Shown here in pieces: positions 2,751-26,252 of a stretch of DNA of 64,000 bases. The DNA comes from Geosiphon pyriformis uo1 (taxonomy: Eukaryota > Fungi > Glomeromycota). Location: the NCBI GenBank assembly GCA_016748015.1, contig JAAOMT010000211.1, positions 254,933 through 318,932 on the forward strand, written 5' to 3'. The translations under genes and the position numbers were made by a program. Position 1 is the first letter of the stretch. Each line of letters opens with the position of its first letter. Under the pieces are notes generated by a model. That model made no database searches and was not told the origin of the DNA. It was given only the letters and a program-made list of their open reading frames with translations.

Positions 2751-4259
2751 ATAAAGAGATTTGTTTCTTAAAAAATTGTGAAATATAAAAACAAAAAAAC
2801 ATTTTTTTTATTTAAAATTCATGCTCTTTAGAGAATTTTAAACATAAAAGAGAAAAAAGTTTTTTTGTTACAATAATATAATATGTTTTAATAATATATT
2901 TAATTAAGTTTATATTAAACATAATTTATTTTTAATTTTTATATTTTAATTATTATTAAAAATATGTAATTGTAATTTTTTTAATTTAAAAATTTTTTAA
3001 TATTGTGGTTAAAATTAACATATTAAAAAAATGTATTTAATAAAAAAATTGTTAATTGTAAAAATTAATAAAAATAAAAAAAACTTTTTTTTAAAATTTC
3101 AAGTTTAAAGTTTGGTTTTGGTAATATTTATATTAACAATTATTATTAATTATTTTGTTATAAAATTAATCTATTGTTTTTAAAAAATAATTGTTTTTTT
3201 AAAAAACTTAATTACATATATTTTTATAATACTAGACAAAATTAAAATTCTATAAATATTTTTACCAGTATTTTAATATTTTATAAAGTTAAATTTTTAT
3301 TTATTTAGTTAAGCTTATTAAATTAATAATAAAAAAGATTTAAAGCTGTTAAATTTAATAATAAGTTACAATTTAAAATTAAAGCAATTAAAAAGATTTA
3401 ATCTTTAATTTTAATATAAAAACAGCATCTTATTTTATATGTAAATATGTAGTGGTTGGATCATATTTTGTTATAATATTTATTGAAATTATTATTATTA
3501 AAAATTACAATTAATTTTATTATATAAAATTAAAATTTTTATAAGATAAATATATTTAATATGAACCAATAAATTTTACTTTAATTTGTTTTTTACATAA
3601 TAATTCTGATTATAATTTTGCGGTTTAATTTATTTCGGTAATATTATAAAAATAATATTTTTGAGCTTTTAAAGTCAAAGAAATTCATATATATATTTTT
3701 AAATTAACCCATTTTCACATTGTTTTTGATTTTATCATAAATATTATAGAAATTAATTTTAATAATTATTTTGGTGTATCAAGCTTTTGCATTAACATTA
3801 GTTTACTAAACTGTTTTTTCAGTGTCGTTTTATAGATTAAAAAAATGCTAAATTTATTTTTTACTTAAATTGCATTTTCTATAAATCATAAGAAAATATA
3901 ATTACGATAAAAAAAGGATTTAATTTTTTATATTATTACTGTTTAAATTAGTTTTGAAAAAGTGGTCAAAGAAAATCCTTTATTTCTAAAAACATTCCTA
4001 TTTTATTGCAAATAATTAATCTTTAACAAAATATTTGACAGTAAAGGGTTAGGATTTTTTTCCTTATATACCAATTGATCCCATCATGGATTCTTCTTTC
4101 TGCAAAGAATTTGTTACACATATTTGATTTTGTCCAAGTCAATATTAGTCTGGTTTAGACCACATTGGAAAAGTACTAAAGGATTATCGAAGAAAGTAAC
4201 CGAAGTATTAAGGTTTTCATAACACCTACTTTTCCTTTACGTACAGAGTCCTGGCTACA

Positions 4260-5386
4260 ATGTGGGCCTGTTTGTATAAAACTTGTCCGTGTCTACCCCG
4301 TCGAGGAGACATGCAACCACCGTTTAATCATTATTCATATGATAACGACGATGATCCCGTTGAGTTCGTAAACTTGTTGGCAGAACAAGATCCAGATTCG
4401 ATAACTGCCTTTCTCACTGGCAACCCCTTTTCTCGAGCACCAAATACACAAGGATATTTAGGAATTAACAACATGGGTACAGAAGACGAGTTTCCTGGCG
4501 ATGCCTCTGATCGTGGCAGCGTCCTACTTGACGACGAGACCGCTATACAGACACAAGACGCGCAGTTTCTTCCTGATGAACAAATAAGTAAACTTACGGA
4601 GCTTGCTAGTGAGCGGGTATGTTCATTTTCAATGGAATTTTGTTTTTTTTTTGGGATAAGCAGACGAGATAGCAAGGTTCTAGAGAATGGAACCCAAATT
4701 GCAGTCTTTAGGCTTTTTTCCGTGCTCGACCAACAAAGATTCTAATCAATCTTTAATCCTCTTTTAATTACTTGTATTTGATCAGTCAAAATATAATCTT
4801 ACAGATGCACAACTAGCAGCGGAAGAAGAAGAAGCTCGTCGCATTGAAGAGGAAGAAATTCAACGGAAAAGAGAAACAGCTAGACAAGCAGCTATAGCGC
4901 AAGGTCTGGTGACCTCTGAAGCCTTTAACAAAGATACAGTTTTTACCATTTCTGGCGACGATGACGATGAAGTTGAGGAATTTGGTAATCATGCTGTATT
5001 AAATTACAATGGAAAATCAAATGGTTCATCGGTTGAATTATCTGCGACCAGTCAAAACGGCACAGCATCTCGACAGTCTCAAGAGGAACAATTTTCTATT
5101 CTCAATAAGCCGAGAAATCCACGTCAACGTCTTTTTTCTTCGGATATAAACCAAGATGATTATGAGAATGATACAGAAACTGATATTCTGTAAGTAGTTA
5201 TTTTAAGGTGCAATACAAACTAGTTTATTATTAATTTTAATGGTCACTAACTAAATTATGTAACAAATTTTACTTTATTTGAATACTGATTTCAGACCGC
5301 CCAAAAATATCAAAGACCAACCTCCAATTCTACCTGAAACCCATTTGGGGCCACCCTTATCCGTTTCCCTTCAAACCGAAGTATGA
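4260..5386 (+). CDS. Conserved-looking hypothetical fungal protein (multi-exon) with a Cys-rich N-terminus and a coiled-coil segment
   Basis: Exons ~4260-4616, 4786-5189 and 5297-5386 are joined by GT-AG introns. The product contains DAQLAAEEEEARRIEEEEIQRKRETARQAAIAQGL. Both ends are uncertain and an upstream exon is possible. Confidence 0.7.
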
Positions 5387-23295: not shown

Positions 23296-24081
23296 TTTTA
23301 AAAAAATTTTGTTTTTTGAAAATTGTGAGCTTAAATTTATAATAACAGCAGATCTTGACAGAATTTATAATATAATAACCGAAAATAGCTTATACTTTAT
23401 TAAAAATTAGATTGTAAAAAATATTCCAAGATAACAAACTTTTGCTTGATCTTTTGAAATTATTATTTTTGACAATGAATCTTAGAAAATTTTTATTATA
23501 ATTCCTTTTTTAAAAAAAAAATTTTGCTGGTATTATATTATAAAAACCAAAATACTTTGATTTGAAAATAATTCGAAAGTAAAAAACCAACCTAATAAGT
23601 TATGGGATGAATTAAATTTAAAAATGCCACTGAAACAAAGAGCAAACCATTTTCTAGAGGAAAATCAGTGAGACGAAAAAATTATAAATATGCTGTGGCT
23701 TATTCACAGCCTCAAGGTTTTATTTGCTATCTCGATGCTTTTCCTCTAAGTTTAATATTTACTTGTTAAATTCTATTCGAGATATCTCAAGTGTTGGTAA
23801 TTTTCTTGGCGCTAATGTTTGGGTAGATGCTATAAATCACAAGAACCATATTGTTGATTGGAATCTGAACAACGGGATTTACTATGATCTCTACTACCAC
23901 TTGCCCATGACTCTTCGTCACCGCCATGAGGTAACAAAGATTGTGCCTCGATATCTACCAGATCCAAATCCAAATCCGAGTCTTCATCATGAAAGTCTTG
24001 ATATCCAGTGCCGACACCCATATTGTCATTCAAATTTCGCGCACCTTCAAAATCCATATTAGTTTTAGCTCTGCCATATAG

Positions 24082-25434
24082 TCAATCCCCACGTTTTCCT
24101 TTCGTCCCGAGACCACCACCACCACCACGATTATCCGATTTTCCACGTCGGATCCACCGCCATAAACCGGTCTTTTCCCCATCCAATAAGTATGCGGCTC
24201 CTCTAATTATTGCCAATATTCCAATGCTAAAACCAACCATCGACCACCAGGCCCCAATTTCTTGGAATACAATCATACCACTCAATGCCACTAATGTTAC
24301 ATGGGATGCATAGAACATTGGCTGAAATTGGGTGAGCCGGTATTTGGAGAGGGCGATTTGTTTACAAATTTCTTGACCCCCAATTCCAATTATTAAGGAT
24401 ATTAGAAGAGCTGTCAAAGCAAATACGATTGCAACAGTTGATACATCGTCACCGAATACTAATCTCATATTACTACGATATTGAGCATCTCGATAAACTA
24501 AAGTGTCTAAATCGTCAATACCATCGTAATCATCAGGGATAGCTGGAAATGAAACGTCCGGCGAGACGAATAACCAACAGGTTAACAGTAAAGCTAAAAA
24601 TTTGCTTGCTATGACGGTCAAGGAGCCAAATGCAGCCGTCATCAAAACGTACAACACCAAAGATGATTCTTTTTTTCGACTTCTTTGTCTTAGAATCATA
24701 ATCATGGCGAACTCGGCTAAGAAAATGCCAATTAGCCAACAAAGGACCCGAAATTGAAGCATATAGTCAACAATTTGGGCACCAGTCAAATGTTCATCAA
24801 TATCTTGTTGATTGTTCGCAGAGAATAAGATAGTAGCCAAGACACCAGACAGGATCCAAAAGTAGCCGATTTTTTGATGGAATGAAATGTTTTCTCCCAA
24901 AATAAAATAAGCCAGTACTGCGTTTACTACAACACCTAATATTCCAAGTGGTGTGACTACCGAGGCGGGAATTAAAGCTAAAGCTACCCAATTCCCACAT
25001 AATTCTCCTAAATAAACTAGAGATATTCCGAGAAACCATGTTCGATCTCTTAGACGTGAATACTCTTTTGTGGGTTTGCTGGTAGTTGTTGTTACAGTTA
25101 TGGTAGAGCTATTTGGGTTCAAAGCAGTTGTACTCGCACTCATCGGAGGTTCTAGGTCAACATTATCATCATGATTAACAAGAGAGGTAGTAGAAGCGTG
25201 TTGACGCTCTAATAAAGAACTAGAAAGCGAAGTGGTCGATTTCCCAGAGGGAAGACCGTCAGTCAAGTCCAAAATTGGTGTGTTTTCTTTTTCTTCTTCG
25301 GTTGAAGCTGTAGTTAAGGAGGGTAAAGTATTTGAAGCTATTCCACGCGTTAGAGCATATTTTTGTAGACAATTGCCAAGACCTATAACTGAATTGCCGA
25401 CCAAAGCGGCCAATAGGCCCCATAACGAGAGCAT
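24082..25434 (-). CDS. NIPA-family magnesium transporter (DMT superfamily); possible readthrough extension to 23830
   Basis: GNCLQK, RTWFLG, GELCGNWVALALIPASVVTPLG, LGENI and FQPMFY, with about 9 hydrophobic helices; single exon. Confidence 0.88.
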   Translation of the reverse strand: MLSLWGLLAALVGNSVIGLGNCLQKYALTRGIASNTLPSLTTASTEEEKENTPILDLTDGLPSGKSTTSLSSSLLERQHASTTSLVNHDDNVDLEPPMSASTTALNPNSSTITVTTTTSKPTKEYSRLRDRTWFLGISLVYLGELCGNWVALALIPASVVTPLGILGVVVNAVLAYFILGENISFHQKIGYFWILSGVLATILFSANNQQDIDEHLTGAQIVDYMLQFRVLCWLIGIFLAEFAMIMILRQRSRKKESSLVLYVLMTAAFGSLTVIASKFLALLLTCWLFVSPDVSFPAIPDDYDGIDDLDTLVYRDAQYRSNMRLVFGDDVSTVAIVFALTALLISLIIGIGGQEICKQIALSKYRLTQFQPMFYASHVTLVALSGMIVFQEIGAWWSMVGFSIGILAIIRGAAYLLDGEKTGLWRWIRRGKSDNRGGGGGLGTKGKRGD

Positions 25435-25583
25435 TACAAATAAAGACGCGTAGCAGGGTCAAAAGTTTTAAAAATATTTTTTACAGTTGAATTTTATACA
25501 GCAAAAGGCCGAGTTGGTAGGTTTCAGTGAGGATCAAAAAAATTTGTTGCCGCGGTCTACACGGTAATTTAAGTTAAGACTAC

Positions 25584-25584
<1 letters not shown>

Positions 25585-25620
<36 letters not shown>
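25585..25620 (+). repeat. Poly(A) tract (~36 nt) upstream of the NIPA gene
   Basis: Directly visible. Confidence 0.9.
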
Positions 25621-25622
<2 letters not shown>

Positions 25623-26252
25623 AAACGGGAGGTTTTATTATGATTATGAAAGTATTAACTTGAAGAAATTGATTTAAAAGGATCCAAAAGTTTAATAAAA
25701 TCCAGTTTTAAAAAACTTTGGATACGATAATTTTTAATGGTTTAAAAAACAAACTTAAAAGACAACTTATAAAGAATTAATTTAAAGTTGAAGAAAGTTT
25801 TGTGCGAAATTGATTCACGACGCACAGCTTCTTTTGTCTTACTTGGCATCAACTTTGACTGCTAGGTGGACTAAATAGCATCCAAAAATGGAACTTGAAA
25901 TGATGAATGTCACACACGATCATGTCCATTTATAAGAGACTCTTACTGGTTAGTGTTTCAATATATATATATATATATATACATATAGATATATGCCATT
26001 ATTATGACCAACAAGGTACGATACTTGGGTCTCTACGCATACATTCAAAGAGAAAAAGAAGCTCCAAGTTACAAGAACAAATTTCAAATGCCATCATAAT
26101 GATGACAAGTAACAATAATCATATCATCATCATTATTAAATAAACAGCCACGGCGTCATTTGCCACACTGCACAGCCTCACAAGCCTCTAAGTATTAATT
26201 GTTGATGGTTCAAAAAATTGTCCCCTTCTCATTATAATCAAAGTGAAGAGCC

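Follow-up and report, generated by a model that had tools for sequence, protein, structure and literature searches.

The stretch of DNA analysed here (the window) comprises 64,000 nucleotides of Geosiphon pyriformis uo1 (contig JAAOMT010000211.1, positions 254,933 to 318,932), and the subject is an in-frame TGA stop codon, directly followed by CTA, at the 3' end of a gene for a NIPA-family transporter. The gene and all features described below lie on the minus strand, and positions are those of the window. The core open reading frame (ORF), read directly from the sequence, has 450 codons and no intron (24085..25434); it runs from an ATG at 25434 to a last codon GAT at 24087-24085 and would give a short isoform of the protein. 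The 3' end reads CGT GGG GAT TGA CTA TAT GGC AGA. The first stop, a proposed leaky stop, is the TGA at 24082..24084 with CTA next (24081-24079), and the stop context GAT TGA CTA TAT GGC AGA, as delimited in the codon-spaced alignment of orthologues, occupies 24070..24087. An extension of 83 codons in the same frame as the core (23833..24081) is open up to a TAG at 23830..23832, which would end the proposed long isoform. Farther downstream an AATAAA hexamer (23719..23724) is likely to be the polyadenylation site, because a contig from the sequencing run X1 stops 28 nt beyond it, at 23691; the transcript would then end there. A sequence-only reading of the window had placed the stop at 24084-24082 within GAT TGA CTA TAT and had described the same frame as open for 83 codons to the TAG at 23830, and on re-reading the sequence these coordinates were borne out (24081-23833, then TAG 23832-23830). 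Also its statement that the ORF list gives the tail as a separate ORF of 75 aa proved correct, this ORF being ATG-started and located at 23830..24057.

The core and the tail were searched and translated as two separate pieces throughout, and the Geosiphon genome searched consisted of 128.3 Mb in 792 contigs. The Pfam search placed the core in the family PF05653 (Mg_trans_NIPA) with 85.5 bits, the gathering cut-off being 26.2. The closest proteins were the Ambispora orthologues with 56-58% identity, followed by those of Glomerales and Paraglomus with 48-50%. The public annotation of the Geosiphon genome includes the protein (P0001) with 450 aa, terminating at the TGA. A Ser/Thr-rich, weakly conserved loop follows helix 1 (core residues 30-125, window ~25060-25345). 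This loop is ~95 aa long in Geosiphon and Ambispora and much shorter in Glomerales, and the annotation of Ambispora leptoticha cuts a 126-nt in-frame intron from it though the frame is open there.

The DNA of the orthologues was fetched from behind the orthologous proteins, the 3' ends were read and a codon-spaced alignment was made. The window and all eight orthologous loci had the in-frame pattern GAY TGA CTA TAT G at corresponding positions, the loci representing Archaeosporales, Paraglomerales and Glomerales. The stops were located at position 4411 of locus L001 in Ambispora gerdemannii, 4402 of L002 in A. leptoticha, 4063 of L003 in Paraglomus brasilianum, 1202 of L008 in a Paraglomus-like environmental JGI contig, 3590 of L004 in Rhizophagus diaphanus, 2581 of L010 in R. 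irregularis (also L009 and L011), 3563 of L005 in R. clarus and 3569 of L006 in Funneliformis caledonium. In every one of these loci, as in the window, the UGA is directly followed by CUA. The conservation across Glomeromycotina that the sequence-only reading had proposed to look for was thus found: TGA-CTA is invariant in eight species of three orders, and no sense codon replaces the stop.

The codons flanking the stop drift among the species, synonymously too (GAT/GAC and GGC/GGT), and in the Ambispora pair the synonymous changes TCG/TCA, GGT/GGA and GCC/GCA are found near it. The Leu after the stop is nevertheless encoded by CTA in every species, though only 7-22% of the Leu codons of these genes are CTA, and the following Tyr is always TAT. 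Because neighbouring codons vary synonymously yet CTA and TAT are fixed, the alignment indicates a conservation of the context that exceeds what the protein sequence would require. The 18-mer pattern of the stop context occurs once in the 128-Mb genome. The motif and the tail were not found in the two outgroups, where the stop reads TGA TTC, followed three codons later by another stop, in Calcarisporiella, and TGA TCG in Jimgerdemannia. A metagenome scan for more orthologues returned only the already known JGI contig. Judged from this distribution, the TGA-CTA arrangement is old and has been kept in Archaeosporales, Paraglomerales and Glomerales.

That the TGA is an error of assembly, or a nonsense allele private to Geosiphon in a formerly longer gene, has nothing in its favour but prior expectation. 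The TGA-CTA is present unchanged, with no sense codon in its place, also in the second data set, a 1,280-nt contig of run X1 that covers 23691-24970 without gap or joint; X1 is the sole public run containing the Geosiphon stretch, and its RNA or DNA nature is not on record. As the TGA is kept, in addition, in eight further assemblies or contigs belonging to three orders, the probability of an error or a private allele is close to nil, and this explanation can be regarded as already refuted. The X1 contig differs from the assembly by three bases (24063, 24155 and 24365), none of them at the stop. All three differences are transversions and non-synonymous, one of them replacing Thr by Pro in the tail and the other two replacing Trp by Leu and Cys by Ser in the core, and they may represent strain-level or nucleus-level variation, or contig errors. 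The depth of X1 was 23 across the 3' 1.3 kb of the gene, 2 across the next 250 nt, and zero at the 5' end of the gene and on both intergenic sides. This coverage fits a 3'-biased transcript better than genomic DNA, which is suggestive only.

The tail in the window is acidic (isoelectric point 4.2), occurs as a single copy in the genome and matched no family in the Pfam search. The probability of an 83-codon open frame arising by chance was about 0.002 in base shuffles of the tail, and the other two forward frames contain 2 and 12 stops. In the eight species the tails are 52-83 codons long, and in all of them frame 0 alone is open, the other frames having 1-14 stops; in base shuffles the frame stayed open in 0.0006-0.023 of the trials, depending on the species. 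The tail of the window matched that of A. gerdemannii in BLASTP (E = 2e-5). The A. gerdemannii tail includes no Met, and therefore it cannot be an independently started ORF.

The comparison of A. gerdemannii and A. leptoticha gave a ratio of non-synonymous to synonymous substitution rates (dN/dS) of 0.29 in the tail and 0.25 in the core, with a significant synonymous excess in the tail (P = 0.003). In this pair the tail indels measure 3, 6 and 3 nt, and nucleotide identity, which is 80% within the tail, is only 64% past the second stop, where the indels are mostly non-triplet. The tails of R. irregularis and R. clarus share 93% identity and have no indels (dN/dS 0.44), and the 150 nt past the second stop are 69% identical with nine indels. 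The tails of Rhizophagus and Funneliformis gave dN/dS values of 0.5-0.6, these and the value of R. irregularis and R. clarus not being individually significant. The downstream dN/dS below 1 that the sequence-only reading had expected of a translated extension was hence observed, with values of 0.29-0.58 in a frame that is open, and the comparisons indicate that the tail is under purifying selection as protein. Across the orders the likeness of the tails consists of short motifs in a fixed order, namely LYG[RG], an acidic stretch, E-x-[DQ]-x-L-[LFV] and Y-G-x-[CIL]; the sequence GIISD within the acidic stretch is common to Ambispora and Funneliformis. The tail probably behaves like a disordered segment with short linear motifs.

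The same conservation could in principle reflect an RNA-level function of a 3' untranslated region, with the TGA acting as an efficient terminator and the tail never being translated. The annotators of Geosiphon and Rhizophagus do terminate the protein at the TGA, and the tail is without protein evidence, both of which agree with such a function. Selection on RNA is, however, difficult to combine with a frame 0 that alone is open in eight species, with triplet indels and a synonymous excess, or with peptide motifs that are kept while their codons vary. Furthermore, RNAalifold on seven species found no conserved RNA structure, and this explanation appears very unlikely.

Splicing offers another way past the stop, as a short in-frame intron, constitutive or alternative, could remove the TGA so that the long form would be produced from a spliced mRNA. 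Every species indeed has in-frame GT..AG pairs across the stop, with 97-145 of them per locus. The shortest pair in the window, from the GT at 24092 to the AG at 24045, would define a 48-nt intron with a CTAAT branch-like site. Gene predictors also bridge the stop in A. gerdemannii (72 nt, L001 4369-4440), A. leptoticha (111 nt, L002 about 4393-4503), P. brasilianum (51 nt over the stop, L003 4027-4077, and a second intron at 4177-4510) and F. caledonium (87 nt, L006 3497-3583), and the model of F. geosporum (protein P0008) includes a similar jump over the stop. The lengths of the annotated stop-bridging introns (72, 111, 51 and 87 nt) are without exception divisible by three, and no two of the introns share their ends. 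These ends are non-homologous, and each intron removes residues that are kept in a sister species (for example GIISD, or the block around K-x-x-D / LYG). The P. brasilianum model leaves the tail early, and the conserved YGTI end is lost. The introns look like devices of the gene finders for getting past an in-frame stop. The models of the Geosiphon genome, Rhizophagus spp. and Glomus cerebriforme, in contrast, end at the TGA, and both kinds of model probably misdescribe the long isoform.

All in-frame GT..AG pairs were enumerated in seven loci, and the splice-site hypothesis was rejected on the result: there was no good donor outside the part coding for transmembrane segments, and none that was positionally conserved. 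The nearby donors are non-consensus, and consensus-like donors were present only within conserved transmembrane-coding sequence. The sequence-only reading had found no convincing intron that would remove the stop in frame. This held as far as the donors are concerned, since GTGGGG, GTGGTC and GTGGTG are non-consensus and unconserved, but its argument from incompatible phases failed, as the phase-1 GTs at 24092 and 24112-24127 do pair in frame with the AG at 24046-24045 (at least 48 nt). The 48-nt candidate itself (24045..24092, donor GTGGGG) was rejected for its non-consensus donor, its unconserved sites and the colinearity of X1. Altogether five of the five contigs, all of transcript size, were colinear through the stop, which is suggestive evidence against an intron, the RNA or DNA nature of their sources not being on record: that of X1, the Logan contigs L007, L012 and L013 of R. 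irregularis (one from each of three runs; 1.4-1.8 kb, ending in the flanks of the gene as transcripts would) and the Paraglomus-like JGI contig (L008). An intron would also leave an invariant TGA CTA TAT G beside drifting codons unexplained. Splicing is on these grounds considered unlikely as the source of the long form.

We infer that the stop is bypassed by readthrough, and that programmed readthrough at UGA-CUA probably makes a longer second form of the NIPA transporter. One unspliced mRNA would then give two forms of this membrane protein. Most ribosomes would terminate at the UGA (24084-24082) and produce the 450-aa transporter. The UGA followed by CUA would be a poor termination signal, at which some ribosomes would insert a near-cognate amino acid and continue; in yeast and mammals the amino acid inserted at UGA is Trp, Arg or Cys. 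The continuing ribosomes would translate the 83 codons to the UAG at 23832-23830 and thereby add the acidic, probably disordered tail to the predicted cytosolic C-terminus, where the E-x-x-x-L-[LFV] and Y-G-x-[CIL] motifs would route the long form elsewhere than the short form. In Ustilago maydis and in HeLa cells, UGA CUA needs no further element to cause efficient readthrough, and in the CUA context UGA outperforms UAA or UAG (PMC4207609). The description of UGA-CUA in the sequence-only reading as the minimal readthrough signal of fungi and animals agrees with these experiments in Ustilago and human cells (PMC4207609).

The UGA might also be decoded by a dedicated mechanism, either as selenocysteine or by a UGA-reading tRNA, instead of by near-cognate leakage. 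With the Rfam model for tRNA-Sec, no such tRNA was found in the 128-Mb genome; the best match (42.7 bits, below the cut-off of 47) was a tRNA-Ser(CGA). As this whole-genome search gave only tRNA-Ser, selenocysteine was rejected. Further, the site lies in a disordered tail and not in a redox motif, and in five of the eight species the tail is itself terminated by a TGA, and therefore TGA functions as a stop in these genes. The CUA context is moreover one known to act without a special tRNA (PMC4207609). Dedicated decoding is accordingly rated as highly improbable, the tRNA search having been aimed at tRNA-Sec.

The best conserved internal feature of the tail is a dileucine-like motif, in the window EAQSLL (23932..23949), identified from the tail alignment. 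The sequence-only reading had matched EAQSLL to the acidic dileucine signal [DE]xxxL[LI], and the motif is present at 23949-23932 with a counterpart in every tail, L-F and L-V variants occurring in Glomerales. The orthologous versions are ETDTLL, ETDALL, ETDSLF and EIDSLV, with one E-x-x-x-L-[LFV] per tail. A second motif, YGSC (23839..23850), is found in the alignment near the C-terminus. Its counterparts YGAC, YGTI, YGAI and YGAL are inside the last eight residues, and those of Glomerales and Paraglomus are YxxPhi-like. Every tail begins with LYG. The dileucine-type motif appeared in 0.2-1.4% of the residue shuffles per tail, and this motif and the Y-G-x-[CIL] motif together in at most one in 10,000, although these figures are flattering as the patterns were defined post hoc from the same tails. 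The tails end in CDL, ACY, CYV, GTI, AIT, AIM or ALV, and none of them has a peroxisomal targeting signal of type 1 (PTS1; SKL-like). The sequence-only reading had argued from the CDL end that this would not be the usual peroxisomal case, which now extends to all the species: no tail ends in PTS1, and therefore the extension does not represent the peroxisomal case known from fungi.

Of the 40 residues in the segment that follows the last helix, 10 are K or R, and the loops before it are basic and acidic in turn. Under the positive-inside rule this pattern fits a cytosolic C-terminus. The acidic dileucine [DE]xxxL[LI] and YxxPhi are the two classical types of adaptor-complex sorting signals. 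Such signals are carried by the yeast AP-3 cargoes Vam3 and ALP, of which ALP uses an L-V variant. The resemblance of the NIPA tails to these systems lies in the combination of E-x-x-x-L-[LFV] with a Y-G-x-[ILC] close to the end, both in a membrane-protein tail predicted to face the cytosol; they differ in that here there is a sequence match only, and in that L-F and Y-G-x-C are non-canonical. Because the tail is predicted to be cytosolic and has signals of two classical adaptor types, the long form could plausibly take another route than the short form, for instance to the membrane of an endosome or vacuole, or by retrieval from the plasma membrane, a role that is speculative but motivated.

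Several observations weigh against readthrough with a sorting function. The evidence for readthrough comes from sequence. CUA is followed by U and not by the G of the strongest mammalian context, and RNAalifold predicted no pairs downstream of the stop in the seven species; because of this U and the missing conserved downstream structure, the readthrough level may be low, and it is not predictable from the context. None of the runs that yielded the colinear contigs is recorded as RNA, there is no further intron in the gene by which RNA and DNA could be distinguished, and a minor spliced isoform would escape notice in contigs. Among the matches listed in two word-based protein searches, there was no orthologue from Diversisporales. 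The profile-profile comparison of the Archaeosporales tails with the other tails aligned the first nine residues only (E = 0.0028). Since this alignment is so short and BLASTP of the Ambispora tail against the Funneliformis tail gave no significant match, the homology of the tails across the orders rests on position and short motifs. As to the motifs, the dileucine type has its canonical form in the window, in the two Ambispora species and in Paraglomus and is L-F or L-V in Glomerales, and the Y-G-x-C of Archaeosporales ends in Cys where a classical motif would have a bulky hydrophobic residue.

Upstream of the NIPA gene, a 15-mer, CCGYGTAGACCGCGG (25550-25564, minus strand), is common to Geosiphon, the three Rhizophagus species and Funneliformis. 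It is situated 11 nt before the first in-frame ATG in R. irregularis (L010), R. diaphanus (L004) and R. clarus (L005), and 191 nt before the ATG in F. caledonium (L006). The 15-mer is an inverted repeat CCGCG/CGCGG (CCG-N9-CGG), and its 11-mer core has one occurrence in the 128-Mb genome. As an exact word it was not found in Ambispora or Paraglomus. From its sequence, it could be a gene-specific site for a zinc-cluster-type transcription factor or a hairpin of the 5' untranslated region. Just beyond it, ~150 nt upstream of the start codon, there is a 36-nt poly(T) run (25585-25620, minus strand), and poly(T) runs are also present upstream of the Rhizophagus orthologues. A (TA)n microsatellite is located farther upstream (window about 25960-25985).

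The mechanism itself is known, and what is notable here is the depth of conservation together with a non-peroxisomal fungal case. To our knowledge, the functional readthrough described in fungi concerns essentially soluble enzymes to which it adds a peroxisomal signal, and literature searches yielded no report of the process in NIPA proteins or in arbuscular-mycorrhizal fungi. The present case would extend fungal readthrough to a polytopic transporter with a long, motif-bearing tail. Its comparative support is unusually clean, the same 13 bases being found in three arbuscular-mycorrhizal orders, and GAY UGA CUA UAU GG provides a short natural context for tests of termination efficiency. It also gives a hypothesis for how one transporter may be placed in two membranes in fungi that are not yet routinely transformable. 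For annotation, the consequence is that at least five public models invent an intron at the stop and at least five others, that of Geosiphon included, truncate the protein. A more far-reaching and tentative proposal, to which we give somewhat less than even weight, is that UGA-CUA is an ancient switch that predates the split of Paraglomerales, Archaeosporales and Glomerales and adds adaptor-type signals so that one mRNA serves two membranes; it would then be the first non-peroxisomal functional readthrough extension of fungi, with GAY UGA CUA UAU GG as its lineage-specific context.

In comparison with the peroxisomal UGA-CUA readthrough systems (PMC4207609, PMC4359377), the NIPA case has the same UGA C U A core, a stop conserved across species and a short in-frame extension with a targeting signal, in NIPA a putative one, one mRNA giving two isoforms for two destinations, which for NIPA is the inferred outcome. 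The differences are in the extension, which in the NIPA proteins is 52-83 aa and not about 10 and has no PTS1, in the host, which is a polytopic membrane transporter and not a soluble enzyme, and in the context, which continues UAU GG and not with a G at +4. Within the NIPA family, the core is typical in matching PF05653 far above the cut-off, and the Glomeromycotina orthologues differ from the family in the long Ser/Thr-rich loop after helix 1 and in the proposed readthrough tail. The mammalian AQP4ex, in which aquaporin-4 is extended by readthrough at UGA CUA G, has been demonstrated experimentally, whereas the NIPA case is known from sequence; AQP4ex also belongs to an unrelated family in another kingdom and has other motifs. 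Nevertheless, both are membrane channels or transporters in which a cytosolic C-terminus is, or in NIPA would be, lengthened, and in AQP4ex the extension changes the location of the protein.

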